From assembly GCA_965202585.1 (NCBI GenBank), contig OZ241830.1:33046001-33110000 (forward strand): a stretch of DNA of 64,000 nucleotides, written 5' to 3'. The notes under the pieces are model-generated. The model was not told the origin of the DNA. It saw nothing but the letters and a program-made list of their open reading frames with translations, and searched no databases. How positions within the stretch are numbered: the first letter of the stretch is position 1; each line of letters starts with the position of its first letter. Source of the stretch: Thalia democratica. Lineage: Eukaryota. This document shows positions 124 to 54,200 of the stretch, piece by piece. The position numbers were made by a program, and so were the translations under genes.

Positions 124-3100
124 ATCAATGAAATAGAAATAGAAGACGTGAAGGCAAACACACATTACCAAATCAATGTCAGACCTTTTAACTCAGTTGG
201 TAATGGACCAATTTCAGAAACACTAACAGTTGATACTCCACCAGGTATAAAGCAAAAGATGTATAAACTCAAGAATCTATTACTATTAAAATATGAACTA
301 AGTTTTCATTATAAACTTCTTTTTTAACCAAACTACTATTAATATTAATAATATTAATAAACTACTAATTCTAAAATAATATTTAATACTCTTATAAAAA
401 TAAACTTTTATGTGTACTAAACTTTAATTTTAATGATAGTGCACGGAGTGATATCGGTGGCTGAGGACAAGATCGAGTTGAAGCAGACAGACGGTAAACT
501 GAAGTTAAAAATACTGAGGGAAGGTGAAAATAGGGGTAGGGTTGTTGTGCCTTGGATGGTTAAAACAACATTGCCGAAATCTGCTTACAAAGTTAGTGAT
601 ACATGCAATTGATAACTAAAATTATAATTTACTATAATATTGTTTTGTTCTTTAACTGTTATGTTTTTAATAAGTTATAAATATAAAACAAACGTCTAAA
701 AAAATTTCAAGAAAAAAAAAAGGATTTAAAAAAAAAATGATAACAAAATATTTTTTTTACTAGAATTCATTAAATATTTGAAGTATGACTTTTTTTCGCA
801 GAACTTTAGCGGTCATGAAACTTTCAAGGACGGCGAAAAAGAGAGCACAATTAAGTTTGATTTACCCAGCAATCCTCAAAATAACGAAAAAGAAGACTTC
901 AGGTAAAATCTGAATAAAGAGTTAATGTATGTTTAAACAACTAATCAACTTTGCGTCTTGCATCAAAATCATAACTAGTTGTTTTTTAGCTATAACTCAA
1001 GCTCCCTAATGATATCTGTTTTAGTAATGTAAAATAAGTTTCTTAAATAAATCTTTAAACATCAATTCAGCATCATACTGGGTCAACCCACCGGCGGCTC
1101 GGTCCTCTCAGAAAAGGCCGAGTGTCACGTCATAGTCACGCACGACATCCAGCCCGGAAAAATACAATTCCACAAACCCTCGTACGAGTTCAACCAGACA
1201 GATGTGGAGGTCGTTGTGAAGGTGGTGAGGTCGGTGAACTGCAGCGGAAAGGTCAGGGTTCCGTGGAGGGCCATTGTTGAGGACGATCAGTTTTCTCCCT
1301 ACATGGAAATCGGGGGTCACGAGACCTTCAAGAGCGGCGAGGAAGAATCTCACATCAAAATCAAGATTCCACAGGTGAGGATCGTTTAACCTTCTAAAAT
1401 ATATTTATTACAAGTTTTTCTACAACTAAAACAAGCTTTACCTTTAAAGAAATAAATGAATATAGTTAAAACTTTATTGCATTCGCTTGATTATAAAGAT
1501 TTTCAGTATTCATTTTTTAATGCTGTTTTTGATTACTTTAGTAAACCTTAAGGTTTAGCAGTTCTGTGAGTAAAAGTAAAAACAGCACAAAATACTTTTA
1601 AAATTTTACAGGATCCGCGCCCTGTCCTCAAGGACAATTTTAAGATCATCTTGATGAAGCCAAAACCTGATAGCAGCATCATTGACGCAGATTGCAGTTG
1701 TGACGTCACAGTTGTGAACGACATAACACCGGCAGTCATTGAAATGCTGGAGGAGGATGTTAAGGTGAAGCAGTCGGATGGAGAACTGTCATTACACGTG
1801 CTCAGGAGCGAGGAACTGAAGGGAAGGATCGTGGTTCCGTGGAAGATCTTGCCGGAAAGCGACGACTCCGTTTACATGAACGTCACAGGTAATGAAAACT
1901 TATTTATAATAAACACTTAAAAAAGTTTGAGCAACTAGCTGTTGTTAATCATCAATATTTTGATTTGCTTAATATACATGTCTGTGATTATGTTTTTACA
2001 TTCAAAATTTTATTTTTCAATTTCATTAGAGACTTGTATGATTTGATAAGTCTGCTAAAGTTATAATACATAAAGTTTAATACATAATTTTTAATATAAC
2101 ATAGTTAAACTTTTTTTTTTTTGCATAGATTACAGATGGTTAACAAAATAAATATTACAGGTGAAGAGACATTGGAAGACGACGAAGAGAGATCAACGAT
2201 TGAAATCCAACTTCCTCAACTGCCTCTGTCCAACACAGAAGAAACTGTTTCTGTTGTGTTGGACGAACCGTACGGTGCTCCCGGAAAACTGGGCAACAAG
2301 AGAAGTTGCATCGTTACTATCAGACACGATAAAGGTTTGCTGAAAGTGATACTGTTTTACTACTTGACTCAGACTTTGATTTTACTTAGATGTAACTTAT
2401 GATTTTTTTTTACTGTACACAATGAAAGTTCTAAAATATGTTCAAAACAAAGTTCATATGATATCAAAAATCACTTTTTATCAGTATCAAAAAAGCAAAA
2501 CGTAATTTTCTAAAAACTAAAAATACATTTTAATTGCATCTGTAGCTTTTGCGCACCTTATAGTTATACCCAAAAGTTTTAAACATAAAACCTAAAAGTG
2601 TCTTTAGTAGCTTTAATATAAATTCAATAAAAAACTCACAGGAGAGGGAGTCATTGAAATGGAGAAGGCGCAGGTCACGTGCAAGAGTTCAGACGAGGAG
2701 GTCGTGGTTGTGGTGTTGAGAAAAGAAGGAAGAGGTTTCGCCAATGAGGTTGACTGGACCGCTGCTGATGGCAGCGCTAAAATCGGTGAAAACTATGGAC
2801 TCAACAAAGGTATGTAATTGAGGACTATCATTTTGACTCAAAGCTACATTCACGTTTTTGTATCAAACTTGTAATGTTACAACTAACAGTTAGTAAAACT
2901 GTAGATGTGTTTAGAATACTGAACTGCTGAAATATAAAAAAAAATGTTAAAACATTTACATTACCAAACTTAAGTAGATAATAGTTTTTTTTTATACTCC
3001 CATCTGCTACTAAAACTAAAAAATAAATGTTTTGTTATTTTGTTGTGAATAAAAAAAATATTATCAGGAGTGGTGAGCTTCAAAGCTGGAGAAGCTTCGA

Positions 3101-3235
3101 GCGAAATCAGGATCCCTATTACTAACGATCCATCGGGAGTTGAGAGAGACTTTGTTGTTAGTTTAGGCGAAGTTGGTGGCAGAGATGTTGCTGGAGAGAT
3201 CATGTCGACGAAAGTAACCATCTCTAATGAAGCAT
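124..3235 (+). CDS. Super-repeat unit 0 (FN3 second half + 4 Calx-beta)
   Basis: Exons B 124-244, C 440-591, D 802-902, E+5'F 1071-1374, 3'F 1612-1888, G 2161-2334, H 2642-2809, I 3068-3235. Confidence 0.9.
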
Positions 3236-6200
3236 GTAAGCATTTGAATCTTATCTCAACTTTGTAATTAAAACAACTTTTTGTACAAAATCTATTATTC
3301 AAATATTTTATAGATAATATATCAAAATTTACAATTTATAAATTTACCTAGTTTTTTAAAATAAAAACAATCGATTAGTTTGTTCAAATTTTCTAATAAT
3401 TTCCAACAGTGCTTCCAGGAGCTGTCAGTAACTTGGAAGGTGAACTCGCCAGTCCTTCATCCATACAAGTCAAGTGGGCCGAACCCGAAGAAGGGGGCCC
3501 CATTGACGGGTACAAAATAATATACTGGAAACCCAACCAAGACCCTAAAGTTATTCCGGTAGACAAAGATGTGAGTGTTATATATTAGCTTTGTTGAACC
3601 CAATGTTTGCTACACTGAAAGGATAAAAAAAGGATAGTTTAACATAATGTTGAATTAAACTGTAAAAAAAACAATAAATGTATTTAAGCTACTACTTTAC
3701 TTAAAACTTTTTTTTTTCAATTTAGACAAGCTAAAGCTTTCTGTTACTGACACTTCATTTTCCTTAAGTCTTAAACTTAAGTCTTAATCGTTTGTATCTT
3801 CGAAGTAACTCAAAAGTAAATTTTGAACGAGTCTAAGCTAACATTTTTACCATCAACTTATGAATTAGGTGACCCAAGGTGTAATCGAAAACTTGGACCC
3901 ATTGGTTCCTTACAAAATCAAAGTGGTTGCCACGAACAGTGTTGGTGATGGTCCTCCGTCTAAAACCTCATCTGTCGAAACTCCTGGAAGTTAGTATATG
4001 CAGTAATTTCTTATAAAGTTTTGGACTTGTTATAATATAAGTAGTTGTTTTACTTAAACTATAAAAATGATATAATGCAGATTATATTACAACTATTTTC
4101 ACAAAATACTTGAGATAGAACTGACTGTGTATTAAAATATGAAAGTAGAGTAAATGAAACATTATGGTAATGTAAAAATAAAAATAAGATAACGATAATA
4201 TATTATTTATAACAATTTGCTTGTAGCAGTAACATTCGAAAACTGTTATGCGATATTTAAGCTTTTAAATAAATAATGTTTAGCAACTTTGAGTAAACTT
4301 TAAGCTATAAGCTTAAGCATAACTTAGTTGTAATTGGTAAAAGTTTATTTTATTTTCACAGTACCCGGAATGTTTGAGTTTGAAAACAATGAGACTGCTG
4401 TTAATCAAAGCGATAAGAAGCTTGTAGTGAAAGTAGTGAGAAAGGACGGTAAGAATGGAAGAGTAATTGTTCCGTGGAGTACTTGTGGTTGCGAGGAGGA
4501 TTCTTATTATAAGGTAATTAATTATTTTATTAGCAAATAGTAAGTATAAAAAATCAACCTAAAAAAATTATATTCCATTCCAGTTAAGCTAATAGTTTTT
4601 GATTTATTTTAAGTAAAAATTATACTTAAACTCGAAAGTAAAAACTGTTACTTAAACTGAGTTTTAAAACAATGGAATTTACGTTTGAAATTATTTTATT
4701 ATAACTTTTTTTAATTTCCAGGACTTAAATGATCAAGAAACATTTAAGAATGAAGAATTAGACAGTCACATTGAAATAGATCTACCAACAAAACCTCAGT
4801 CGAATGATAAAGATTCTTTTGTGTTAGTTATCATTAAGTTTTGCCAGGTGTAATTCTTATTATGACGCATTTAAAAAAAAAAATGCTATAAATATTAGTA
4901 GAAGCTTGTGGCTAAAATTTTGTATAATATTCAAGTAACATTAACAGTATGTTAAAGGATAATTAAGTAATACTTAATCTACAGTATAAAACTGGGTCAA
5001 CCTTCTGGTGGAGCAAGTTTGGGTGAAAATGTTGAATGTCGAATCACAGTTACCAACGATATTTTGCCGGGAAAAATTTATTTTGCCTCACCGACAGTAT
5101 CAGCTAAACAAACTGATGAAGAAATTGTTGTGAAAATAATAAGAAGCCAATACACTGAAGGTAAAAATAGCTTAAAAAACTATTTGATTAAATTCATTCA
5201 TTTCGATATTCATATAGGAATGTAGTTTACTAAAATAAGTATACATAATAAAAAAAAAACAGACAAAGTAAAAGTTGGGTGGAAAACAGTCTGCAAAGAC
5301 GAGAACTCTCCGTTCGCAAACATTTCCGGAGTGGAGACATTCGAAGAAGATGAGGACGAATCCCACATCGAGATAAAAAATCCCCAGGAAGCCAGAAACG
5401 AAACAAAAGATAATTTCGACATCGTGCTTAGTGATCCGAAACCTTCGACTTCTGTTGTCGACAAAAACAACAAGTGCAGCGTCACCGTCGATAATGACGT
5501 CATAGAAGCTGTGCTGCAAATGACGAAGGATAATGTTAAGGCGAAGCAGAGTGATGAGAAAGTAGTCGTTCCGGTTGAGAGGACAGACCAGTTGAAGGGA
5601 AAAGTTACTGTTCCGTGGAAGATCCAACCTGTGAGCTCAGACTCCGTTTACATGAACATAGGAGGTTTGTTAATTTCTAACAAGAACTTTAGTTGTTAAT
5701 ATATAAGGTTGAGGTGTTTTAACATTAAATTTGACTTTAAAATATTATATTAACAAGTTAAGTGAAAACATAAGTTATACTAGTTTTTGGGACTGTAGAT
5801 TTTAGTTTTTGACTACTCTGAGTACAGTCAAGCTTTAAATTACTGTTTTTAATAGTTTTTTTTGTTGTCTATCTTAAACAGAACAACAAAATGTTTTTTT
5901 TTTTTTCTACAGGCGAACTTAAATTAGACGATGATGAGAAAGAAGGAGAAATTGTCATTGAAATTCCTCAACTTCCGCTGTCGAACACAGAAGAAACGGT
6001 GACTGTTGTTCTTGAACAACCATACGGTGTTCCTGCTAAATTAGGAAAGAACAACAGCTGCAAGATGTCCATCACACACGACAAAGGTCAGTTTTATTAT
6101 ATAATTATTCAAATGATTGGAAAATTTCAGAACGAAAAACATCAAAAAATATTTCAATTACACGTTTATAGAATATTTAAAACTAAATTGTGCTAATTAT

Positions 6201-9200
6201 ATTACCAATTTAATATTTTTTGATGACTATTATAAGTTTTATAATATTTTAACTAAGTTTAGAAATAATTATTTGTAGCTTGATGCTAATTCAACTAAAA
6301 AATATTTGTACTCAATGCAGGAAAAGGAATAGTCGAGATGGGATCTTCACAAGTAACTTGTTCAAGCGAAGACGATGAAGCTCACATTTCAGTTATCAGA
6401 AAATTTGCATGCGCTTTTGCAGCTCAAGTTCACTGGTCAGCTACTGATGGTGACGCTTTATTGCAGCAGCATTACGACATGAAATCGGGAGTTCTCAATT
6501 TCAAAGCTGGTGAGTCTCAGGCCAATATAAAGATCCCGATCTTGAACGACCCCAGTGGCAAGACGCGTCATTTCACCGTGTTTATCGATGACGTAATTGG
6601 TAGGGACAAGAAAGGAGAAAAGCTGGAAACAAAAGTGGTTGTTGCCAACAAAGCAGGTTATTGTTGTTCTTTAATTTAAACCATCTTTTTTTTTTCGTTC
6701 AAGTAGATTAAGTAAAGCAAATTTCATTTCTTAAAGGTAAATATACTAACAGCTTGTCAAACTTAAAAAAAGATAGTAAAAAAACTAACCTGTTTAAACT
6801 TGTAACTACTTATTTTTTGTAGTTGAATTTGCATCAGGGTACTACTAATATTTTCAAACAGTCCTCCCTGGAAAAGTGAAAGACTTGTCGGCCGAGTTGG
6901 AATCCCCCACATCGATACACGTGGCATGGAAGAAGCCGGAGGAGGGTGGTCCGATTACTGGGTACAAATTTATGTATTGGGACAGACCCGAGGAAATCAT
7001 CGCTGCTAATGTCGACCATGATGTATGTTTATATAATTTTTTTTGAGCTCTATACTTATCAAATTATTTTCACGACCTTTATAAGTAACTCTTTAAGAAA
7101 CAGTTTGTTGATGAAAACCTGATTTTAATATTTTTTTTATTAACTCATTGTAAGAATTTAACTAATTAAAAAGTTTTATTTTATTTTAAGTATGCCTACA
7201 CATAAGTATAAGTAGTACACATTCCTGAAATAAATAAACCAGTTCAGCTCAACGATACTTTTCTGTTTTTCTGATAGTTTAGGAATATCAAGGTTCAAAT
7301 TGTGTCTAATTGAAAAGTTTCAGATTAACAAACCAGTTTAACAAGAGTAGTTTTGTAGAAGTAGTTTTCACGAATAGTTGTGCTAAACTGTTTTTTTTTC
7401 ACAAAACTTAAATTTTAATTTAAAAAAGAAATGTACTACAAAGTATAAATTTAATTTTGTTTGCGATAATGTTATAAAGAAAAATAATAATGCCATTAAA
7501 ATTTCAGGTGAACGAAATGATAATAGAGCACTTGGAGCCGATGGTAAAGTACAACATGAAAGTTGTACCTTTCAATGAAGTAGGCGATGGCCCAGATTCT
7601 AAAGTCGTCTCTGTCGAAACTTCACCAAGTAAATACATTTTCCGTTAAGTTTAACTAGTTAAACGATGATATCTACATTAATTCATCGTAATAATCAATT
7701 GAAAAAAAAAATATTACTTATTTATCATAAAACATTATAACTGATTTATGTTAAACCAACTTTTACTAACTCTGCAAAAATATTTTTACTTAAAAGTTTA
7801 AGTTAAAATATTCTAAGTGCTAGAGACCAATTAAATACCCTAAACCGTGCAACCTTTTAAGCTCGCACATGATATTTTTTAGTACCTGGTGTAATTAGTC
7901 ACGAGAAACCAGAGGCTTCTGTCAAGCAAAGTGATAAGAAGCTGGTGTTGAAACTGACCAGAGATTCAGGTGTTAATGGTCGGGTTATTGTACCTTGGAA
8001 ATTGTGTGCTTGCAATGATGATTCGCCTTACAAGGTAATATTAATCATAAAATACTGTAATTTTTGCGTATATAGTGAAGGACGTTCTACATAAGTGTGT
8101 ATTAAAGTAGAAATATTAGATATTACATATATAAACAAATATACAGCAAATTATTTCTTATATAAAATCTAAAGTATTAACTGTAAAATAAAATGAAGGC
8201 ATAGTCATAGTAAAACAAAGTAGTTATCAAAGTAACATAAATATATATATTTTTAAATTAGCAAGGTTTATAAGCAAGATAAACAATTCTAGGAAATGGA
8301 AGGTCAGGAAACATTCAAAGACGGTGAAATTGAAAGTCACATTGAAATTGAACTTTCTGAAACTCCACAAAAATCAGACTCTGAAACATTCACGTGAGTT
8401 TGATCAACTAATGTACAAATTCGTTATTCGTTATTTTTCAACAAAGCAAAACTTGGAAGTTTAAATTCATAATAGCAAAAAAGTTTCTATAGCATAAATA
8501 GACATAATGGTACTTTTATATAATCGAAACTGTAAGTTACAATTCCATTTTTTTTTTTTTTCAAAAAAATTATTTAGCTTTTTAATATAAGTAGAAAAAA
8601 CACTGCAATAACTTTTCAGCGTTACTTTGGGTCAACCTTCTGGTGGAGCAAGTTTGGGTGAAAATGTTGAATGTCGAATCACAGTTACCAACGATATTTT
8701 GCCGGGAAAAATTGATTTTGCTTCACCGACAATATCAGCGAAACAAACTGATGAAGAAATTGTTGTGAAAATATTAAGAAGCCAATACACTGAAGGTAAC
8801 TATAAATAGCACAGAATTAAAGCTAAACATTACTTAAGATAGAAAAGTATGGAATTTGATTTATCTGCCAGGAGGTTTTAGTAAAGAAACTTTAAACATA
8901 AACACTTATACTTTAATAAATTAGTAGTAAAAATTAAAAAAAAGTAACATTACCAGTTAACTTTTTTTTACACAGACAAAGTAAAAGTAGCGTGGAAGGT
9001 GGTTTCAAAAGACCCCGACTCCCCGTTCGCCGGCCTTTCTGGAGTTGAGACTTTCGACGAGGGCGAGGAGGAATCCCACATCGAAATCGACGTGCCCCAG
9101 GACCCGCGTGACGTCACAAAGGATTTGTTCGACATTGTGCTCAGCGACCCGAAACCTTCCACTTCCGTCGTGGAGAAAAACAACAAGTGCCAAGTCACAG

Positions 9201-12200
9201 TCGACAATGACGTCATAGAAGCTGTTGTCAACCTGGACAAGGACGAGGTTGACGCGAAGCAGTCAGACGGGAAGATCGAGCTGACGGTCAGGAGGAGCGA
9301 GCAGTTGCAAGGAAACGTTGTAGTTCCGTGGAAGGTTCTTCCAAGCAGCTCCGACTCTGTTTACACCAATCTTTCAGGTATCTTAAAATTTAAACTATCT
9401 AAACATCTTTAAACTTTAACATCTAAACTTTTGAGCGGTTCGTTTTAAAATCACTACAGAGTGTTTACAACTAGTGTACAAAGAGCAACTTAAAAAATTG
9501 TATTTAATTCTTTAAATAAAAGTTTTATAATTATTATAATTGTAAAAATCTTAATCAGGTGATGTAAAGCTCAAAGAAGGTGAAGATGAAGGTTTGATAA
9601 AAATAAAACTTCCACAAGTAGCTTTGTTAGACGAAGAAGAAAAGGTCACAGTCGTCATAGAAGAACCCCACGGTAGCCCATCTAAACTAGGGCCAGAAAG
9701 AAGTTGCCTAGTAACCATCAGGCACGACAGGGGAGAAGGAATAATCGAGATGGGATCTCCACAAGTAACTTGTTCAAGCGAAGACGATGAAGCTCACATA
9801 TCAGTGATCAGAAAGTTTGCATGCGCTTTTGCAGCTCAAGTTCAGTGGTCGGCTGCTGATGGTGACGCAATATTGAACGAGCATTACGACACACAAACTG
9901 GTGTCCTTAAGTTCAAAGCTGGAGAGGCACAGAAGCTTATCAAGATTCCGCTTCTCAATGACCCAAGCGGTAAGACGCGCTTCTTTACCGTTTCAATCGA
10001 TGACGTAATTGGCAGGGACACGAAAGGGGAAAGTCTGACCACTAAAGTCGTTGTCGCAAACAAAGCAGGTAATTGGTAAAAGTGTTGAGTTTGTTTTGAA
10101 TATTAAATTTTTTTTGTATTGGTTTTTAGAAATTAGTAGTACGTTTTGTGAATAATGTTTGGTTATATTTTTTAATTTTTCATAGTTCTTCCTGGAAAAG
10201 TGAAATCCCTGAAAGGAGAGTTAGAAGGACCATCAGTAATAAACGTGAAATGGGAGAAACCTGAACAAGGTGGGCCCATTGACGGATACAAAGTTATTTT
10301 CTGGGACAAACCTGGAGATGAGAAGACTGTATCCGTAGATCCTGATGTTAGTTTTTGTTGTACCACAAACGCCATTGATAGTTTTATATTTAAGTTATTA
10401 GGAAATATATTTAAGTAATCAAACTAACATATTACTCTTTGAAAACATACATTTCCGAGAACTTTCAAGCCTAAGTAGATACTTCTAAACTAATTTAAAC
10501 TATAACTTTAATTTTAATTATAATTCTTTTATAAGTACTTTAAATAATCTTCTAAATTTTAATTCAAACAAATATTGACAATGTGAAACAACTTTTAAGG
10601 TTGAAGAAATGAACATAGATAATGTCGAACCTTTGACAAAATACAACATCAAAGTTGTTCCGTTCAACAATGTCGGAGATGGTCCATCGTCTAAAGCAGT
10701 CTCAGTAGAAACTCCTGGAAGTCAGTCTATCTAACTTTCATTTATTACTAGTATAAATTTCTATCACACCAAACTACTTGAGATCATAATAAAATAATAT
10801 CTACAAAAATATAAATTTTACTTACTTTTCTTTGTATACAACACAGTTTACATCATATATTAAAACTCAGTTCCGGGATCGGTTCAGTTCGAGAACTACT
10901 TGAAAGAAGTGGGTCAGACAGATAAGAAGCTGGTCATCAAGTTGGTAAGAAGCAGTGGCAAAAATGGTAGGATTGTTGTTCCGTGGTCAGTGTCAAAATG
11001 CGATGATGGATCCGGTTTCAAGGTAAATTTACTTTTAGTAGTATGAAATTTGTCTTATAAAGTAATTGACTTTTAAAGTCATAACAACAACTGATTTTTT
11101 TGTATCTTTTATTCTATTTAAGAGTAATTTCGAAAAGTATACCTATTTGTTCACTAATTGTTAACTTAATTTAAAAGAATATTTAATATGCTTATAACTA
11201 AACACTTTATAGGACTTGAACGGACAAGAAACTTTCAGAAACGGAGAAACAGAAAGTCACATTGAAATAGAACTACCAGAGGAGCCCCAGTCAGCTGATA
11301 ACGAAACATTTGTGTAAGTTTACACTTTTAACTATAAATTCGACATTTTAACGTAAACTAATGTTGAAACTCGCATGAGTGAGCAAAATTTATGTACGCT
11401 TAAGTATGTCTTTAAATTTATAAACTAATAATGTTAGCCTGTTTATATAACTATGTAGTTTAAAAAAAAACATTTGTGACAAAATAAAAAAGCAAAGTGT
11501 AATGCACATGTAAGTTCGAACAAAACATCACAGCATAACCCTCGGAGAGCCATCGGGAGGAGCCAGTTTGGGAGACAACACTGAATGCAAGGTGGTTGTT
11601 ACTTACGACGTGCTTCCTGGTCTGGTTGATTTCGTAAAATCTTCTGTGAATGCCAAACAGACCGATAAGGAAATCGTTGTTGCTCTGAAAAGAACTCAGT
11701 ATAAACAAGGTAATTTTGAATAATTTATTTTTGTTTTCATTATTTTTTCAATTTTTTTTTTTACAAAAACTGTTGCTAGCTTTTTTCACACAAGTTGAAA
11801 TAACTAAGTAATCACCTAGCTTAGTTTTGAAACTAAATGCTTTTTTAAAAATAAAATGATTTGTCAGTTTATTATGATATTCTAGTTTTGCTAACTAAAA
11901 AACCTTGTTAACAAAACAGACAAAGTAAAAGTTGGGTGGAAAACAGTCTGCAAAGACGAGAACTCTCCGTTCGCAAACATTTCCGGAGTGGAGACGTTCG
12001 AAGAAGATGAGGACGAATCCCACATCGAGATAAAAATTCCCCAGGAAGCACGTGACATCAGCAAGGACGTTTTTGACGTCATGCTCATTGACCCGAAGTC
12101 ACCCACCGCCACTGTCAAGAAGAACAACAAGTGCGTTGTGCAAGTGCAGAACGACGTCGTTCAGAGCTTGATTAGCATGGACGATGACGAGGTTGGTGCG

Positions 12201-15200
12201 AATCAGACTGACGGGAAAGTTGAGCTGAAACTGACGAGGAACGATGGAACGAAAGGAAAAGTCGTGGTGCCTTGGAAAGTGCTGCCTGACAGTCCTGATT
12301 CAGTGTATGCCAATATTGGAGGTGACTGCTTAGAAAAATATCAAGATATTTTATATTACTTTTAAGATATGTAATAGTTATTCTTAGTTTTAACGTTTAA
12401 TACTTTAAACAATATTGAAGTTTTACATGTTTGATTCAAGTCTAAGCAAATGTTACTGTAAGTCTAAGTAAAATAAGATTAATATTAAATTGAAATTACC
12501 TTGATTTATGATCTTGTTAGTTTTCAGCTAAGTAACAATAACATTTCTTAAATTTACAAATGCAAATAAATACTAGGTGAAAGTGTATTTGATGATGGTG
12601 ACTCTACAACTGTCATCAACTTCGAATTACCACAAACTGCACTTGCTAACCTAGAAGAAAAAGTCACAGTTGCTTTGGAAGAACCCCACGGTAGCCCTGC
12701 TAAACTGGGGCCAGACAGAAGTTGCCTAGTAACCATTAGACATGACAGGGGAGAAGGAATAGTCGAGATGGGTTCTCCTCAAGTAACTTGTTCGAGCGAA
12801 GACGATGAAGCTCACATATCAGTGATCAGAAAGTTTGCATGCGCTTTTGCAGCTCAAGTTCAATGGTCGGCTGCTGATGGTGACGCTGAATTTGGAAAAC
12901 ACTACAACCTAAATAAAGGTGAGAAAAAAAAAGCGTTGTAAACATGTTTTATTTTAATATTCTATAGCTAAACTAAAGTAAGACAATAATTATTTAAAAG
13001 CTTAAGCTTTAATACTTTTAAAATATGAAACTTTGTTTTATGCTTACCTTTAAAAAAATAGTTATATTAATTTAGATTTTTTGTAGCCTTTTATATACTA
13101 GTCTTTGTACATAAATTTAAAGAAGCTGTTATAGTTCTTACTTAATCGTATATTCATTTTCTTAAGGTGTTGTAAAAATGAAACCGGGAGAGTCGAAGAA
13201 AAGGATAAGAATACCTCTTTTGAACGATCCGAGCGGAAAGACAAGAAACTTCAGCGTTTCAATTAAAGAAGTGACTGGAAGGGACTCGAAAGGAGATTTG
13301 CTAACTACTAAAGTTGTTGTTGCTAACAAAGCAAGTAAGTAACTTTTTAAAACACCTTTTGTATCTTTTTCTTATTGAATAAGAAATGCATAAAGACTGA
13401 TTATTTTATTCTTTTTACAACAATTTTTTTGTTTCACATTTTGTTTGTAAAATAAAATTTTTATTTGAATATTAGTAAAATTTATTGCTAATTGTTGTTT
13501 TGTCTCTTTTTCACAGTCCTCCCTGGAAAGGTAGATGACATTGAGGCTGAATTGAACGGACCATCAGCAATAAATGTTAGTTGGAAGAAACCTGAAGAAG
13601 GAGGTCCTGTCGACGGATACAAAATATTATATTGGGACAAACCTGAAAGTGTCGAGACTGCTGAAGTCGATAAAGATGTAAGTTTTTTTGCTTTTCAAAC
13701 TTATTTTTTATTTTTCTTCTAAATTTTTTTTTGTTCTGTTACTATTATTTCCTTAAAAACATAACATTTTAGTAATCGCTTCTTATAAATGCATAAAACT
13801 TTCATAATAATTATACTTAACAATAGAAACTTATTAATTCAAATGTAATGTTATTATATATAAACCATATTGTAAAAAGAGCAAAAATGTTACAGACTGA
13901 GACTTATGCTGTTGAAGACTTGAAGCCGTTGACGAAATACAACATTAAAGTTTTGCCGTTCAACGACGTTGGAGACGGTCCTTCGTCTAAAGTGGTCTCT
14001 GTTGAAACACCGGGAAGTAAGTAGCTCAAAAAAAAAAACAGTTTTTAAAAATTATAAACAGAATTTTAAATCGAAACTTTCCAGAGATTTGCTCAATAAT
14101 TAGCTAAATACTTAAATTGATTTAAAGTGATATTTTTAATCATATTTATATCTACAGGAGCAGGAACAGTGTCTTTTGACAACAGTGACGTTACAGTTCA
14201 TCAGACAGACAAGGATGTGATTGTGAAGTTGGTGAGGAGAAATGGCGAAAACGGAAGAGTGGTTGTTCCGTGGTCCGTTTGTTCTTGTGACGAGAATTCA
14301 ATTTACAAGGTTATTTGAAAAATGCAAATAAAGTACAACATTGATTGACTAAATGTTTTTTCTTGTTGCATAAATTTGGATTTACTAAAGTTGTTTTAAA
14401 CTTATAAGTTTATTAGGACTTAAATGGTCAAGAAACATTCAAAGACGGCGAAAATGACAGCCACATTGAAATTGAACTTCCAAAAGAGCCTCAAGATTCT
14501 GACAGAGAAAGTTTCATGTTAGTTAACTAACAAGCAAACTAGTCTGTTGAAAATTTAATAAATAAAAACATGTTTTTTTTTTCAGAATAAAACTGGGACA
14601 ACCTTCTGGTGGGGCAAGTGTAGACGAGAATGATCAATGTTCGATTACTGTTCTCAATGATGTGCCATGCGGAAGAATCAACTTCAAAAAACCGAAGATA
14701 ACTGTAAAGCAAACTAGAAAACACATGTTCATCACCATTAAGCGAACAGACTACACTAATGGTAATTATTAAACTAAATGATTTTTTAATTGGTATATTA
14801 TAAAAAAGTACATTTAAAAATTTTTAAGACAAAAAAAAATATTTTACTAAGATTTAGTTAAATAGAAAAAAATATTAAAGCTAACTTAAATTATTGTTTT
14901 TGGTTATTCATAAGCATTAAATCTTAGTATTCTACATTTAAGTTTGCAAAAGAGATAAAAAAAGTTAAACGTACATTTATTTTTAGACAAAGTAAAAGTT
15001 CCATGGCAAACGATCTGCCAAGACACCACTTCCCCGTTCGCTAACCTGAGCGGAGTGGAAACTTTTGAGAAAGGAGAAGAGGAATCCAACATCGAGATCA
15101 AGATTCCTCAGGATCCTCGTGACGTTACAAAAGACAAGTTTGATGTCATACTGGGCGACCCGAAGCCTTCCACTTCGCAGGTACCGAAAAAGAACAAGTG

Positions 15201-42200: not shown

Positions 42201-45200
42201 CACCAACTAAGGGAGGTCCAATCGACGGGTACAAGATCATTTATTACGCTGATTCCAAAGATCCAATCGTCAACGAAGTTCCGAAAGACGTTTGTTATGT
42301 TTATTATTTTTTATCTGTAATTTGACTGTTTATTAACAATGTTGTTAACACATTCGAAACAACTTTTTATACTTTTGTTGCATATGTTCACATTTTAAAG
42401 TTCTACAACAAGTAATATAAAAGTATATATTTTTAAACTTAAATCTATTTTTTATCATGACAATTATTTTAGGATGTTACTGGGCTTTTTTACTTCCTAT
42501 TATAAATATGCTAAGAATTTTTTGTACTTGGTCAACTTTTTATTTGTAAACGTATTACCAATATTCTTATATTGTTGTCATTCTCTTGTACAGGTAAACG
42601 GAGCGGAGATCACGGATCTTGAACCTTTAGTGAGCTACCACGTGATGGTGCAAGCTTATAACGATGTAGGGGACGGCCCATCTGTGAAACCCGTTGTACT
42701 TGAAACACCAGCAGGTCGGTTATGTACAAAGTGTTTTCAATATTGTTATTAAAGAGATTACATTTAAAACGTTAACATTAAAAACTTGATTTTAACTTTT
42801 CTAAAAGGATTTCTTATTTTATTATACTTGAAAAGGTTGTTATTTTCTTACCACCAAAATCTGGTAGAAATTAAAATATTTAATTCATAGATTATTATTT
42901 AAAACGATTTACAAAAATAAATTTTTTTACAGACATATTTGTTTGTCTAGCTAGTACATATCTTTAACTTTATTAGCTTTAGCAATATAGTAGTCAGCTT
43001 TAGTGCTACATAAATTAAAGGTAAAAGTATACTGTACTTTAATGAAAACGTTGTACTTTCATTTAAATATTAACTTTGTCAATACAGTACCGGGAGTAGT
43101 GCATGTAACCAAGAAGGAGATCTTCATAAACCAGACTAAGAAGAAGTTTGTGTTAAAACTTAGGAGAAAGGACGGTAGCAATGGAAGGATAGTGGTGCCT
43201 TGGAGTGTCAAGTCTGAAAATGAGAATTCTCCTTACCAAGTACGTTGTTGTTTTTTAAAGCAGTTAACATTTTATAATTATATAATCATTATTAATTCTA
43301 AATAAAAATTTTATAATAAGTATAGTATTAAGTAAGGTATTTTTTAGACATAACCAACAAGTTTTTACAATAAACGTATAACAATTTTAATATATATTTC
43401 TTTAAACTCATTATTTACTTTATTCAAAGGACTTGCGCGGACACGAGCACTTTAAGGATGGAGAAATGGAAAGTCACATTGAGTTTGGACTACCTAAACT
43501 ACCACAAAGCACAAAACAAGACGAGTTTATGTAAGTTTGAACTTCACAAAAGAACTTAAAAATAAATTTAGTCTTTAATTCAAATAACTTATAATAATTC
43601 TAAAACATAATGTATAGAAATAACTTTTTAACTTTTATACAGTATTTTTTTTATTACTTATTGTAATATAAACTGCAGTAATACTTTACCGAAAAAGTTA
43701 TACTAAGTTTTTTTTTAATTTTTAAGACCACGAAATCTTTTTTGAAGAAACGTAAAATTTTGAACAATAAAGATCAAAAAATTACATCATAATAAGTGCA
43801 AACGCAATTAAACTTTCATCTTTCTTAATTAATTATGTGAAAAAATTTAAATTTTTGAAGTATTTACTTTCAAAATTTAAATAATTTCATTTACTTTCAA
43901 AACAGCATCACACTGGGCGAACCATCAGGGGGCGCGAGTTTGGGTGAGGAAGTGGAATGCAAGGTTACTGTTAGCAACGACATTCTCGCGGGCAAAATCG
44001 ATTTCGATAGAAACCAGTTGAATGTCTACCAATCATCCAAGAACATCAACATCAAGCTGAAGAGAACCCAGTTTACTAAAGGTATTTAATATAAAAAACT
44101 CTTTAACTACTATTTGAATTACATTTAAAATACAACTGCTTTTGTTACAACTTTATCGCTTGTTTTATACATTTAATATATAAAATGAAGATTAACAGAA
44201 ATAAGATTAGTTTAATGTAAATATTTTAGTATTATCAACTAAATAAAATAAATTTTTAAATCATAAAAAATAATTAAGATTTCACACTAAAAACTCTGTA
44301 CGTATTACGCTGTATAAACATTGATAACAAAAATTGGTCAACAAGTCTTCAAATTTAAAAGAATATTAGTAAACACAAAACTTTTTATCACTTAACAGAC
44401 AAGGTGAAGGTGGGATGGAAGACAGTGACGTCGGACGAGACATCCCCGTTCAACAACTTGAAAGGAGTGGAGACGTTCGAAGAAGGAGACAAGACGTCTA
44501 CAATCGAGATACCAATCAGCCAGGAACCTCGTGATGTCAACAAGGACAAGTTCCAAGTTGTTCTCGATCAACCGCAACCTCATACATCCGTCGTTGATGA
44601 GAATAACCAGATACAGGTTTGATAATTAATCAGTCATATTGAATAATAAGATCCATAACTATAAAAAGTATGAACGAAAATAAATGCAGATTAGGTTTTC
44701 GCTTTAAGAACTTTTGTAATTTTCACAAATTCACTTTTTAAATTACAAAAGCATACGTTAGTGGAAAAAAGGTTTAATAAACAACACAATAGAGGTAATT
44801 TTAAACCGTGCAGAAGATTACATAAAGTAACTATAATACAAAATACTGAACATGAAACAAGTAAATTTAAAAGGTAATTGTTGACAACGACGTGATACCT
44901 GCGGTGGTCGCGATGAAGAAGAGCGAAGTGGAGGTCCAACAAGGAGAAGGAAGACTGAAGCTGGAGGTAAAGAGAAGCAAGCAGAAGAAGGGAGATGTAA
45001 CGGTGCCGTGGAAAGTGGTGCCCAAGAGCAACGATTCCGTTTACATGAACATTTCAGGTTAGTAAGAATGTTTGTATATGATTAGCAAAACTAAGTTAAG
45101 TTCGATCAAACATTGTAAGTTCTTTAAAAGTGTTAATTACCTTTAAAGAATACTTTTCTTTGGTTATATATTTTTTTTATATTACACGTACATGTATTTA

Positions 45201-48200: not shown

Positions 48201-51200
48201 AAACTATAATAAAACTAAACTATTTTAAACTTAATACTAAACTTTTAAGTTGTTTAACACATGTGTCACAGACCTTAAGCATAAAGTCTTATGCGATATT
48301 GAACTAATGTTTCAAGTCGGTATTAAAAATTATAATGATTTAATGTAAAGTATAAAAATAAAGTAAAAATATTTACTCTATTAAAACAAGTTATTTGAAA
48401 TTTGTTTAAGATTTAAACTTTTATACAACTACTTTTTCTTTACTTAGCGTTTTTTATCTTTTTAATTGTTATAAGAAATATTATTGTTTGTAATTGTAGC
48501 TTCATAGCAATTTGTTTTAGTTTAATAAAAACCACAACTGTTTCATACATATAAAAATTCTACACACAGTTACATTTTCTTTTCCCAACTTAATGAAAGT
48601 TGCGAAATTTCAAAGCGCGCTCAAACTTTCAAAAGCCACTTGAAACACAACAAAGAACATATTATAGGTAAGGTGAAAATCCCGTGGAAAACAATAGTCG
48701 GCGACGACCAAGCAGATTCTCCATACGCCAACCTCAGCGGCATTGAGACGTTTGAGGATGGAGAAAAGAGCTCGCACATAGAAGTGAAGATTCCTCAGTT
48801 ACCACGCGACTGCAAGCAGGATCTTTTCGAAGTTGTGCTTAGTAATCCTTCAAGTGATGTGGTGCAAGTCGATGACGGGGAGAAATGCTCCGTCGTTGTT
48901 AAAAATAACATTGGTTCGTACTTAATTACTTTAAATAACCTTTTCTTATTATAAATTTCATAATATAAAATTGTAAAAAAAAAAATGTTTTGGTTTTGTA
49001 TTAGTCTGATTGTACTATCGGGTATTTTTTTTAGTGTACAACTGTTGATCATTAAATCTTAAGAAAATCTTATATAATAAAGCTTTTTTACAGCAAACGC
49101 CAAACTGTCGTTCACTGAAACAACGAGAGAAGTGAACCAGAGCGAGGGAAGAGTGCAGCTGGTAGTGAGGAGAGAAGAGCAGATGAGAGGAGAAATTATC
49201 CTTCCGTGGAAGATTGTTCCACAGAGTCCCGACTCCGTGTACGTTGGAATGAGAGGTTTGAAATTATTTCAAGAACTCAATTTGTTTTTATTTTTATTTT
49301 TAGTATCTGTTTTACCTTTAAAGCTTGAATAAGCTATGTAATCACAAGTTGTACACTTATACTTAAAAAAATTGTACTCAAGTTAACTAAAAAACAAAAT
49401 GAAATTCTGAAAACAACACAGGAGAAACGATAATGAAGGACGGTAATGACGAGGGAATTGTCACTGTTGCCCTGCCGCAATTACCGCTTCCAGACCAGCA
49501 CGAGACAATTGTGGTCATCATGGACCATCCACAAGGAGCTCCAGCAGTCCTTGCTGATGAATGCATATCTACCATCACCGTCAGAAACGACCTCGGTATG
49601 TGTTCAAAATTTTTGTGACGTAGTAAATATAGGAATGATTGGTGATTATTTTTTTCAATTAAATATTTAATAGTATTTTAAAACATTATTTTCTCTTTTA
49701 ACTTTATCAATTTTGTTTATTAAAGTTTTTAAAAACATATTGCTCTTTTTACTTATTAAAGTTAGTTAAAAAGAAACAGTCTCGGCAATGCTTGTATAAA
49801 TAAACTTTTTATCCTTAACTTCATAGGCGAGGGAGTGATCGAGATGAAGAGCAACGAAGTGAATGGAAGCAGCAGAGATGGCGAAGCTAACGTGACTTTG
49901 TTGAGGAAAATAGCTGACGAGTTTGCAGCTACTGTTAGTTGGTCGGCTCAGAATGGAAGCGCATTGTACAAAACTCATTACACTCTCAATCAAGGTTAGA
50001 AAGTGTGAAAGTGTTAGAAATAATAGAGCTGGTAGTTGTTAAGTTTAAAAGCTTATATACTACATAAAGTACTTAGCCTACTTAAAGATAACTGTTTAAA
50101 TGTTTATCTATTTATTGCAAACTGTAAATAAATAAAAACTTTTAATTATACTTTTAATCTAAAAGGTTATCATAAATTTTTGCTTCTTATACATTTTATA
50201 AAAAAAGAGATTTAAAAAATTAATAGAAATAAAAAAAAGTTATAAGTTATTTTTTGTATGATAATTTTTTTTATTAATTAATTTAAGCATTTAATTGATT
50301 CTTATTTTTACCTATAACGTATTCATAGATTATTTTTTGATTTTAAGTTTGAATACTAAGTACTAATGTGATCAAATTTGTATGCAAAAAGGTGTTGTCA
50401 AGTTCAAGCCTGGTGAGAAGGAAAGGAGAATTACAATTCCATTGCTGAACGACCCGTCTGCCCAATCACGTGATTTTTACGTCACAATCGACAGTGTGGA
50501 AGGAAGAGACCAGAAAGGAGAAAAGACTAAATGCAAGGTGGTAGTCAGCAATGAAGCAGGTTAGATGATATTTTTTTTACATGACTGTTTATAAAAAATA
50601 AACCTAAAACTATAATAGTATTTTGTTTGTAAAAAATAAAATACAACTTTTTATGTATTAGTATTTCTTCAACAGCTATGTATGTTATGCAAAGTAGACA
50701 CACTATTACTTTCTAACTAAACATCAAAGTTTCAACATATTTTTTCGGCTTAGAGTTTTGGAAATTTGAATTTTAAAAATATTCTATTAATTTTCTTAAT
50801 CAAGACACATTTTTGTTTATGTTTTAATATAGTTTGTTAATGAATACAGTTACAGATGTAAAGCAATATATCCTAGTTAGCATTTTTTCAAGTAGTATTT
50901 TTTTAATTATAAATCAATATAATTAACTTCACCACAGTACCACCATCGGCTGTAAGCGATTTGTTTGTGAGCGTGCTGAACGAGAGAAGCGTCATGGTGA
51001 CGTGGAACGCCGCGGATGACGTCATACCCGTCACCGGTTACGTCATTAGCTACTGGAAGGAGTCGTCGAGGAGCGAAGTTGAAACAATCATCATTCCTCC
51101 CGAGGTTTGAACATGTTTTATAAACTATCTATTTTATTACTGTTATAACATATTTTGTATAAAAAATCACAAGCCTGTGTTTACGTTCTTATAAACAATG

Positions 51201-54200
51201 CAGGCGGAACAAGCAAGTTTGGAAGGATTGGAGCCCAACACATCTTATCACTTCAATGTTCGTGCGACCAATGATGCTGGAGAGTCCATTCCATCAGAAA
51301 CAATTGATGTTGAAACCCCGCCAGGTTTTTAAAAATATATGTTTTTACTTTTTTTAACTTGAGATGCTTTAATTGAGAATTTTGGATAATTATCTATACT
51401 TATTTTGTTCAAAATTTAAAAACATTTTTTTTTAAATATTTTTATGCAAAAAATGGAATTAAAACTAGTCTGTTTCAAAATTAATATATTAAAAAAAACT
51501 ATAAAAACATACATCTAAATATGCTATTGACAATAATAAAACAGTAATAAAAAATACTTTCTTACCAACAGAACTTGGAGTGATATCTGTTGCACTGAAA
51601 TCTGCAGCGTGCAAGCAGAGCGACGGCAAGATCAAGGTGAAAGTGTTGAGGGAAGTGCTCACTAGGGGTCGCGTCGTCGTGCCTTGGAGCATTACGTGCC
51701 CCGACGCCACTTCTCCCTACAAGGACCTTCACGGTCTGGAGACGTTCAAGGACGGCGAGGGAGAAAGTCACATTGAGATCGAGCTTATGGAAGAACCGAG
51801 AGCGACAACTAGCGACGGATTCATGTTTAAATTTTTTATAATTTTTCATTTTACCTTAGTTTATATTGAAGATCATACTTTCTTTAGAATATTTTTCTTC
51901 GGCCTTTTTAAGTAATAAAGAATTATGTGACGAACTATAACTTATTTTTGAAATTTTGATTATCAGTTTTGGGCATACTAATTTTAGTTTGGTTTATTAA
52001 AGCCGTTTCATTTTGATAAGTGTGAAGTATTTATTCCTTTATTAACAATTAAACTGAAAGTAAAGCATAACAAACTTAATAAAATCGCATCATATTTCAC
52101 AGCATCAAGCTGGGTCAGCCCACTGGAAGCGCTCTCCTGTCAACCGACAACTCGACGTGTCACGTGACCATTCAAAACGACATCAAGCCAGGACTAATAT
52201 CCTTCAAAGAAACAAGTATCAAGTTCGACCAATCGTCGAAGGACAAGATCGTGCTAAAGGTGCTCAGAAGCGAACCGCGCAAGGGCAAGGTCCAAGTTCC
52301 GTGGAGCGTGACGAGCCACACTCAGGATTCCCCCTACCAGAAACTCAACGGCGTTGAGACGTTTGAGGACGGCGAGAAGGACTCGCACATCGAGATAGAC
52401 GTGCACAAGCTGCCGAGGAACGCGGTGGTCGACAAGCTGGCGGTGGTGCTGGGCAAGCCGAAGTCGGCGAACGCAGTGTTGGATGACAAGTTGAGCAGGT
52501 GCGACATCACCATCAACAATAACATTGGTTGGTTTTTGTTTTAGTTTTTTTTTTTTTGATTGCTGAAAACTTTAAGGAATAGTTGATTTGTTTAAAAATG
52601 ATCGTCTCATTATAAAATAGTTACAAGAAAAGTTTTATGTGGTTGATTAAAATAAAATTAAATTAAAATTTCTGTACAAATTCAAATAAAAGTCACTTTA
52701 AAACTACTTTCATATTTTTAACTAAAATACTGATTTAGTTTTAGTACTTATATTAAGTGTAGTATACATTCTGTTCTATTCAAATACAAATTTATGAATG
52801 CATATTTGTTTTATTTGTAGCACCGGGAATAGTCGAGTTGGTGCCAATCAAAGATGAAGTTCGTCAATCAGACGGAAAAGTTCAGGTGAAAGTAACAAGA
52901 ACCACAAGAACAATTGGAACTTGCTCCGTGCCGTGGAAAATAATTACCAAGTCTAATGACTCTGTATACACCAACCTGAATGGTTAATATTTGTTGTAGT
53001 GAATTTTATTTTCTAAACTAAACAGTAACTTTTGTTGCAACATTTTTTGAGACAACTTTAAAATGAAAAAACAATTAATGAAAAAAATCCTTATACAGGC
53101 AACTAATGTATTTTATAGTTAACATAGATTCGAACATAAAAAGGCAATAAGCTATCAGTAAAAACACAATACTTTAAAACTACAAGCTCTCTGTTCAATA
53201 AGAAATACTTTCCGCTAACAGGCACACTCGTCATCGACGACGGTAAGGACCAGGCCACGGTCGACGTCCCACTACCAAGAACGGCCTTGCCAAACCAGCA
53301 CGAGGAAATCAACTTGGTCATCAACGAGCCGTTCCCGCGCGACCAGTTCAAACTGGGCAAGGTGACGTCATGCGGCATTGACGTCACGCACGACGTGGGA
53401 GAGGGAGTGGTTGAGATGTTCGCCGACGAGATCAGCTGCCCGACGGTGGAGAACGTCGAGGCCAACGTGAGAGTGCTGAGGAAGATTGCTAGCTCGTTCG
53501 CTGCAGAGGTTCAGTGGGTGGCGGTTGATAAGGACGCTGTGTTCAACAAGCATTACAGAGCTAACAAAGGTTAGAAAATAAGTGATGCTCATTTTAAATA
53601 GCTTTTTTTTTTAATAGAAACTAGCTTGAAATTAAAAACTCAGTTATTAATTTTTAGTTACATTAATTAATTATACTAATTTCATTAATCTTTTTTTTTC
53701 TTAAGAAAAATATAAGTTTATAAACTGTGCATAATTTTGTTTACTATGTCTCGATAAACTTCAACAAACTTGAAGCAACGAAAAAAAAATTGTTCTAGCA
53801 GTTTAACCACTAACTAGTAAAACTTTTTAAACATTTGATTCAGGCACAATCAAGATGAAGGCGGGAGAGTCGGAAGCGAGCATCAAGATCCCACTCGTCA
53901 ACGATCCATCGGGAACATCCAGGCACTTCGTGGTGAAACTTGTTAAAGTTGTGGGAAGAGATCAGATGGGAGACAAGACGAATTGTAAAGTTAACATCGT
54001 CAACAAAGCCAGTAAGTTGCTCGAAAGAGTCTATAGGGTTCAAATATACTAAATATAATAAATTTAATTTAAAAATTGTTTCTTTATATTCAATACGTAC
54101 ATGAACTGTAGATTGTTAGGTGGTTGCTGTTAAATAGTTCTGTAAGACTTACTCACTTTCCGTAAATGTTATTTAACTTTAAGTTTTTTAGCAGTTGATC

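Follow-up and report, generated by a model that had tools for sequence, protein, structure and literature searches.

The DNA analysed here (the window) is a stretch of 64,000 nucleotides (nt) of Thalia democratica (GenBank assembly GCA_965202585.1, contig OZ241830.1, positions 33,046,001 to 33,110,000 of the forward strand), and it carries a long tandem array within what is predicted to be one giant gene. The window is AT-rich animal DNA (33% GC). Its + strand holds a long run of short open segments that encode Calx-beta and FN3 domains. Spliced alignment resolves these segments into 15 tandem units, numbered 0 to 14, with four Calx-beta domains and one FN3 domain encoded per unit, in the standard case on nine exons (B to J). 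We focus on one property of this array: its units have their exon borders in common and differ in the introns that they carry.

An array of nine-exon Calx-beta/FN3 units

Exon structures were obtained with a custom-written, cyclic protein-to-genome spliced aligner that models GT/GC..AG introns explicitly and in three phases. The reference was initially a hand-built unit and subsequently the spliced unit 6, and the J/B border at 16876/17019 was set by hand to a gttagt donor. Exon models for 54975-55809, beyond the array, proved unreliable and were set aside. The resulting exon set, across the 15 units, is B 121, C 152, D 101, E 176, F 402, G 174, H 168, I 168 and J 161-167 nt, with intron phases 1, 0, 2, 1, 1, 1, 1, 1 and 0. 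A first-pass annotation, made by a model from the letters alone, had reported that the borders agree to the nucleotide among all units; the alignment returns the same picture, with identical lengths and phases throughout. All 131 introns of the array are GT-AG (median length 224 nt), GC content is 22% in introns and 46% in exons, and the joined frame runs for 24,514 nt without a stop codon. Stop-free joined frames of 1.6 kb per unit, set amid introns of 22% GC, place this structure far beyond chance. Tandem Repeats Finder reported no repeat across the array, the period being too long for the program.

In terms of protein identity, the exons match the Pfam families Calx-beta (PF03160) and fn3 (PF00041), and the nearest sequences in the PDB are the CBD domains of NCX1 and the Calx-beta domain of integrin beta-4. 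PDB 3fq4 gives a weak Calx-beta match only, which does not discriminate an integrin beta-4-type gene. Word-index protein searches with single exons returned only short open reading frame fragments from Tara metagenomes, without an annotated relative. Judged within the window, the predicted gene product is a giant Calx-beta/FN3 repeat protein.

Intron presence and absence among the units

Measured against the standard unit, the array shows nine intron absences and five additions over 135 canonical sites (Table 1). The E/F intron is absent from units 0 and 14, C/D from unit 14, G/H from units 2, 3, 5 and 14, and H/I from units 1 and 2; the first-pass annotation had listed exactly these absences, and the independent spliced alignment reproduces each of them. 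That annotation had also placed extra introns inside exon F. The positions given for unit 7 (nt 211) and unit 12 (nt 218) stand, while ‘about 125’ in unit 0 becomes 128 and ‘about 240’ in units 13 and 14 becomes 246 and 249, which occupy one aligned column. Its statement that fused exons are mostly exact sums also holds: the sums are 253, 336, 342 and 510 nt, and unit 14 departs from exactness by in-frame indels only.

These figures constrain what kind of change took place. Fused exons align codon for codon with the separate exons of other units, with no spare sequence left over. Split F exons total 402-411 nt and align codon for codon with the unsplit F, so the extra introns are insertions rather than intronised coding sequence or introns that have slid. 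Sliding between F211 and F218 in particular was considered and rejected: each split exon adds up to exactly 402 nt, colinear with unsplit F, and the two units concerned (7 and 12) are not sister units. The unit-specific insertions (F128, F211 and F218) all fall within the first 218 nt of exon F, the longest exon, and the 578-nt E+F stretch is unbroken in none of the 15 units.

Table 1. Coordinates in the window of the array, its reference unit, the deviating exons and introns, and the conversion tracts (F' is the part of exon F that precedes an extra intron)
Feature	Position	Strand	Basis
Array of 15 tandem units (Calx-beta x4 + FN3)	124-54806	+	Spliced alignment; Pfam Calx-beta, fn3
Unit 0, fused exon E+F' (176+128 = 304 nt), no E/F intron	1071-1374	+	Alignment; 304-nt exon also in L011
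Unit 0, extra intron after F nt 128, phase 0, 237 nt, 24% GC	1375-1611	+	Alignment; co-located in L011
Unit 1, fused exon H+I, 336 = 168+168 nt	6321-6656	+	Alignment; 336-nt exon also in L001, L002, L003
Unit 2, fused exon G+H+I, 510 = 174+168+168 nt	9559-10068	+	Alignment; G+H contiguous in L001
Unit 3, fused exon G+H, 342 = 174+168 nt	12577-12918	+	Alignment
Unit 5, fused exon G+H, 342 = 174+168 nt	18987-19328	+	Alignment
Unit 7, extra intron after F nt 211 (F split 211+191), phase 2, 221 nt	25256-25476	+	Alignment; 216-nt orthologue in L007
Unit 12, extra intron after F nt 218 (F split 218+184), phase 0, 257 nt	44617-44873	+	Alignment
Unit 13, extra intron after F nt 246 (F split 246+162), phase 1	48914-49093	+	Alignment; RNA contigs X1, X2, X6
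Unit 14, fused exon C+D, 253 = 152+101 nt	51572-51824	+	Alignment; contiguous RNA contigs
Unit 14, fused exon E+F' (176+249 nt)	52103-52527	+	Alignment; RNA contig; organism B DNA
Unit 14, extra intron after F nt 249, phase 1	52528-52820	+	Alignment; RNA loose ends
Unit 14, fused exon G+H, 348 nt	53222-53569	+	Alignment; contiguous RNA contigs
Exon E conversion patch, 91-95% among units 1, 2, 6, 10	4993-5164 (also 8628-8797, 21418-21589, 36045-36214)	+	Block identities, self-blastn
Exon H conversion patch, first ~140 nt, 90-96% among units 1-6	6321-6460	+	Self-blastn, windowed identities
Tract across intronless G/H junction, unit 2	9635-9868	+	92-94% to 12653-12928 (unit 3) and 19064-19338 (unit 5); self-blastn
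Unit 6, reference with nine canonical exons	20537-23571	+	Spliced alignment; structure matched in related-species contig L007
Unit 6, exons B-E	B 20537-20657, C 20907-21058, D 21127-21227, E 21410-21585	+	
Unit 6, exons F-G	F 21749-22150, G 22347-22520	+	
Unit 6, exons H-J	H 22683-22850, I 22947-23114, J 23405-23571	+	
Sixteenth B exon, beyond unit 14	54686-54806	+	Spliced alignment

The broader proposal of the first-pass annotation, that introns were lost or gained precisely among paralogous units, is borne out by the sequence, by RNA contigs and by independent DNA of related taxa. RNA contigs cover 48600-54100, that is units 13 and 14, the region with the most deviating states. They derive from two marine metatranscriptome runs (X1 and X2) and from a source-organism run (X6) that has the character of RNA, with zero depth in introns and spliced contigs. 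GT..AG joints were found at 10 of the 12 introns predicted in this region, including the extra intron of unit 13; its joint is given as 48911 to 49093 with a single intervening letter, which equals the predicted 48913/49094 with a synonymous T>C change. At the other two (the extra intron and the I/J intron of unit 14) the contigs have loose ends that read into the neighbouring exon. For the extra intron these ends lie at 52820 in all three runs (X1, X2 and X6) and carry the sequence of the end of F', and no joint is listed because 52502-52673 was masked as a repeat. The fused exons of unit 14 are continuous in RNA: C+D is bounded by confirmed joints (51324/51572 and 51824/52103), a contig spans the former E/F site at 52279, and G+H is contiguous over 53221-53567. 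In these two units the fused exons are not internally spliced and the extra introns are removed.

Two related taxa extend these observations. Organism B (DNA run X5, exons ~97% identical) has fused exons as in the window; its DNA is contiguous over 52096-52501 (unit 14 E+F') and carries a diverged intervening sequence at the site of the unit 13 extra intron. A related species is represented by a small number of Tara Oceans metagenome contigs (L001, L007 and L011), all from one sample. All 18 exons that could be compared are equal in length to those of the window, with exons 90.7% and introns ~65% identical. The intron states of the window recur in units 0, 1, 2, 6, 7 and 8. In particular, H+I is fused in unit 1 and G+H in unit 2, unit 0 (L011) has the fused E+F' together with the F128 intron, unit 7 (L007) has an F211 intron of 216 nt (73% identical), and units 6 and 8 have the full canonical structure. 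Since the states are shared with related taxa, the mosaic cannot be put down to artefacts of modelling or assembly, and it is older than the divergence of these taxa. Every state that can be tested across them is fixed; the turnover is old and not a live polymorphism. A 22-nt invariant word from exon H, scanned against JGI metagenome contigs, gave no match.

One further Tara contig (L006:1-904) is a hybrid. Its positions 1-480 correspond to unit 3 (end of F, F/G intron and G) at 91-98% identity, positions 540-904 correspond to unit 2 (3' half of H, fused I and the start of the next intron) at 95-100%, and the switch lies inside a tract common to both units. This contig is either an assembler chimera or a recombinant unit that would bring the H/I loss into a unit 3 context.

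Gene conversion and the number of events

Block-wise identity among the units is 50-65%, and terminal branches measure 0.3-1.1 substitutions per site, values that mark the units as old copies. Discrete patches of near-identity (90-96%) stand out in units that are 50-65% identical elsewhere. Beyond the four units in which it is strongest (Table 1), the exon E patch is 81-86% identical to units 5 and 7, and the similarity of units 1 and 10 spans the E/F intron and F (4983-5651 versus 36035-36715, 79%). Exon H is 81-94% identical block-wise among units 1-6, and exon J is 93% identical between units 3 and 4. Some of the tracts found by self-blast reach 10-40 nt into introns. Tracts that enter or cross introns point to exchange between genomic copies, that is, at the DNA level. 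The pattern is that of gene conversion: high-identity tracts in diverged paralogues, silent sites and some intron sequence included.

The related species provides a view of when this exchange took place. In its exon H of units 1, 2 and 6, paralogues differ from one another by 3 nt compared to 5-8 nt from their orthologues in the window, which are small counts (example tracts are 6321-6460, 9733-9870 and 22683-22820 in the window and L001:241-350, L001:3459-3568 and L007:1011-1120 in the contigs). Exon F shows the opposite pattern, with orthologues differing by 41-59 nt and paralogues by 128-140 nt, and in exon E paralogue and orthologue distances are equal. Paralogues closer than orthologues in exon H, with the reverse in exon F, suggest that conversion went on after speciation, given the small counts for H.

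Conversion also bears on the loss of the G/H intron. In units 2, 3 and 5, which lack this intron, the high-identity tract begins ~97 nt before the junction (86-94% identical upstream, in G), and the flanking 5' part of G is merely 50-59% identical. Where the intron is retained (units 1, 4 and 6), the tract begins at the first base of H. Homogenisation of G only in the intronless units argues that one junction was copied, as opposed to three independent losses. The absence of G/H from units 2, 3 and 5 is thus best read, from the shape of these tracts, as a single loss spread by gene conversion.

Counted in this way, the 14 deviating unit-states go back to roughly 9-10 events. Units 1 and 2 show raised identity over the whole of H+I (82%, self-blast) and a clade of the two is not rejected by the approximately unbiased test (p-AU 0.47), which makes a single loss of H/I probable. 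Units 0 and 14 are grouped on the best-supported split of the unrooted unit tree (87/94 for DNA, 93/94 for protein); lying on one side of it, they require a single change on the tree for the absence of E/F. A clade of units 7 and 12 is rejected (p-AU 0.011), and F211 and F218 are accordingly separate insertions. In the protein tree unit 13 goes with unit 12 (97/95) and not with unit 14, although a clade of 13 and 14 is not rejected (p-AU 0.27).

The best explanation of the mosaic, and in our judgement a highly probable one, is tandem amplification followed by exact intron deletions, insertions into exon F and gene conversion between units. A ~3.6-kb nine-exon module (four Calx-beta and one FN3) would have been duplicated in tandem within one giant gene until it numbered at least 15 copies, and intron positions and phases would be identical to the base because the whole module was duplicated. 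Exact deletions would then have removed C/D and G/H in unit 14, G/H once in the lineage of units 2, 3 and 5, and H/I once in units 1 and 2; the E/F intron of units 0 and 14 may have gone in the same way. Insertions would have entered the long exon F with its coding sequence left intact (F128 in unit 0, F211 in unit 7 and F218 in unit 12). Finally, non-allelic gene conversion at the DNA level would homogenise short patches in exons E, H and J and would have taken the intronless G/H junction into three non-adjacent units. Given one intronless copy, conversion would be enough to spread a loss.

For the deletions we lean slightly towards recombination with a spliced cDNA, or with a neighbour unit that was already intronless, in preference to microhomology-mediated deletion. 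Introns were removed exactly, without change to the flanking codons, as expected under the spliced-cDNA model of loss. Unit 2 lost two adjacent introns, and unit 14 (the last unit) lost three that are not adjacent. Both this exactness and the loss of two introns in unit 2 are in keeping with the cDNA model. On the other hand, the AG/G splice consensus provides microhomology at both intron ends, which equally allows a genomic deletion.

The five extra introns consist of ordinary AT-rich sequence (20-25% GC). Under the model of AGGT tandem duplication, Smith-Waterman comparisons gave scores that are not significant. The ends of the unit 7 intron match the adjoining exons in register at 22 of 40 positions, which ranks first among the 131 introns (z ~3), and AACAG/GT flanks this intron at both ends; the end similarity of the extra introns in units 0, 12, 13 and 14 is not above background in the same 131-intron comparison. 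The unit 7 intron may thus retain a hint, in the form of a weak trace, of a small tandem duplication around AACAG/GT.

Competing histories and known parallels

To place the deviating introns in the history of the domains, 60 Calx-beta domains were aligned and the introns mapped onto the alignment. Column 60 takes both F/G and H/I, each in phase 1; the C/D intron precedes that column by three codons and is in phase 0, and the introns at the domain boundaries B/C, G/H and I/J are all of phase 1. The extra intron of units 13 and 14 sits exactly at the boundary of Calx-2 and Calx-3 (column 0, phase 1), and its junction reads AATAACATTG/CA in both units. For E/F, at column 36, and for the single-unit introns, at columns 80, 111 and 114, the alignment shows no counterpart in the other domains. 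It is therefore possible that units 13 and 14 keep an ancestral module-boundary intron which the core of the array has lost, or that the two neighbours share a single gain. Likewise, E/F may have been gained in the ancestor of units 1-13 and amplified 13-fold with the unit, or lost in units 0 and 14.

These placements feed the most serious competitor to amplification with later deletion and insertion. The outer units (0, 13 and 14) would keep older structures and the array would have grown from an inner unit, which makes part of the mosaic inherited heterogeneity. The ancestral state would be a 578-nt E+F without the E/F intron, and three independent splits would have followed: one at E/F (ancestor of units 1-13), one at F128 (unit 0) and one at the Calx-2/Calx-3 boundary (units 13/14); in a variant, the Calx-2/Calx-3 intron is ancestral and was lost in the core. 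We hold this possible, at somewhat short of even chances. Units 0 and 14 share the best-supported split, and the direction of the E/F change depends on the root. The unit 13/14 intron agrees in place and phase with B/C, G/H and I/J, whereas E/F at column 36 is unmatched. The common junction motif of units 13 and 14 and the lack of any unit with an uninterrupted E+F point the same way. Yet inherited heterogeneity does not account for G/H (units 2, 3 and 5), H/I (units 1 and 2), C/D (unit 14) or the introns of units 7 and 12. The pairing of unit 13 with unit 12 in the protein tree also speaks against it, although 13 and 14 together are not rejected, and the gene tolerates long exons in other places (510 nt and 3,021 nt).

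A stronger combination of ideas, in which conversion is still spreading intron absence laterally in two species and E+F was split independently at three places, strikes us as unlikely. If true, it would amount to compensatory intron relocation under a limit on exon length or composition, and the rise of GC at third codon positions (GC3) with exon length, from 36% to 77%, would date each fusion. By exon length, GC3 is ~36% at 101-121 nt, 43-45% at 150-180 nt and 65% in exon F (~400 nt). An intronless exon of 3,021 nt downstream of the array (58939-61959) reaches 77%, with an overall GC content of 56% against 22% in introns, and it matches Calx-beta over at least four stretches. The fused exons of units 14 and 0 have the GC3 of long exons (61-81%), and those of units 1, 2, 3 and 5 the GC3 of short exons (20-52%). 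The latter may be younger fusions, or conversion may have reset them.

It is more doubtful still that the single-unit introns stem from a mobile element that generates introns (an introner or a miniature inverted-repeat transposable element), copies of which inserted in exon F. Three independent insertions within 220 nt, each at an AG/G(T) site, would suit such an element, as would the 7-nt direct repeat AACAGGT that flanks the unit 7 intron; recently gained introns of Daphnia reportedly have short flanking direct repeats. Against this, the five extra introns show no significant similarity among themselves or with other parts of the 64-kb window (blast returned low-complexity hits only), no terminal inverted repeats were noticed, and AG/GT repeats are expected from the splice consensus.

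That the mosaic exists in the gene model alone, with fused exons internally spliced or extra introns retained, is very improbable. The idea draws on the confinement of RNA evidence to units 13-14, but the RNA contigs of those units show the opposite. Moreover, the fused exons correspond codon for codon to separate ones and leave nothing to remove, read-through of any extra intron soon meets stop codons, and a species whose introns are ~65% identical has kept the exon lengths and the extra introns. Least credible of all is an assembly artefact from cDNA contamination or from mis-joined or collapsed repeats: 92-96% identical patches can mislead assemblers, and the L006 hybrid switches within one, but fused exons with normal flanking introns occur in contigs of several Tara samples and in organism B, and the window has no runs of N.

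Several points weigh against the amplification, deletion and insertion account itself. The unit tree is star-like and unrooted, and the split that joins units 0 and 14, the two longest branches (87-93% support), could reflect long-branch attraction; the tree is compatible with loss of E/F and with its gain. No feature separates cDNA-mediated from genomic deletion. The single-unit introns match nothing else in the window, and of the three only that of unit 7 has a weak end similarity to its flanking exon. The compared taxa show no difference in presence or absence, and so offer no before-and-after pair. RNA covers units 13 and 14, and units 0-12 rest on open frames, alignment and conservation across species.

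The closest classical parallel is found in the fibrillar collagen genes, where a family of 54-bp exons includes exons of 108 and 162 bp that are classically read as precise intron loss. As in collagen, repeated coding units lie within one gene and some exons are exact sums of unit exons. Unlike collagen, the unit here is a module of nine exons and five domains, gains occur besides losses, and one intronless junction was evidently copied between units. The super-repeats of nebulin are also multi-domain, multi-exon blocks duplicated many times, with a uniform exon pattern (PMC1553488); here the pattern is broken, traceably, in 10 of the 15 units. Similarly, concerted evolution in tandem gene arrays yields near-identity patches in diverged copies and paralogues nearer than orthologues. 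The difference is that the exchange here runs between exons of one transcript unit and carries the intron-absence state along.

Rapid intron turnover is described for tunicates, notably Oikopleura, in a review (PMC4122922, citing Denoeud et al. 2010), with reverse transcription followed by recombination as the proposed route of intron loss. The array fits in being from a tunicate genome with unit-specific introns and intron losses. It departs from Oikopleura in that all of its introns are canonical and of normal size, and in that the comparison is between paralogous units as opposed to species. Novel introns that arose by tandem duplication of an AGGT-containing exon segment have been described in Drosophila (PMC2891723), and routes of gain have been reviewed (PMC3443670). 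The extra introns of the array are likewise pure insertions at AG/G(T), and unit 7 has the most exon-like ends of the 131, but this resemblance is weak (22 of 40 nt, ~20 nt per end) and there is none in units 0 and 12. Recently gained introns are reported from Daphnia as well (PMC4202315).

Our literature search found no description of an intron mosaic among the internal repeats of one gene with a loss copied by conversion. All components are known, and the locus is a well-resolved example of known intron turnover, without a new mechanism; its value lies in being such an example, and possibly a test bed, and not in any surprise. Fifteen copies of nine sites give 135 site-by-unit comparisons within one transcript, at one expression level and in one chromatin context. 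This shared setting removes most confounders of studies that compare intron loss and gain between genes. Furthermore, the locus shows directly that gene conversion can propagate a single loss, so that the number of ‘parallel losses’ counted in a repeat family may be too high. Insertions into the array are also concentrated in its longest exon.

Two minor observations concern the array as a whole. Among its 131 introns (245-54685) the third donor base gives GTA in 64, GTT in 50, GTG in 10 and GTC in 7, and the commonest donor hexamer is GTTAGT. The regular module stops after unit 14, and introns continue downstream of the array: the region 54686-58900 holds a B exon, followed by FN3 and Calx-beta exons that are differently built.

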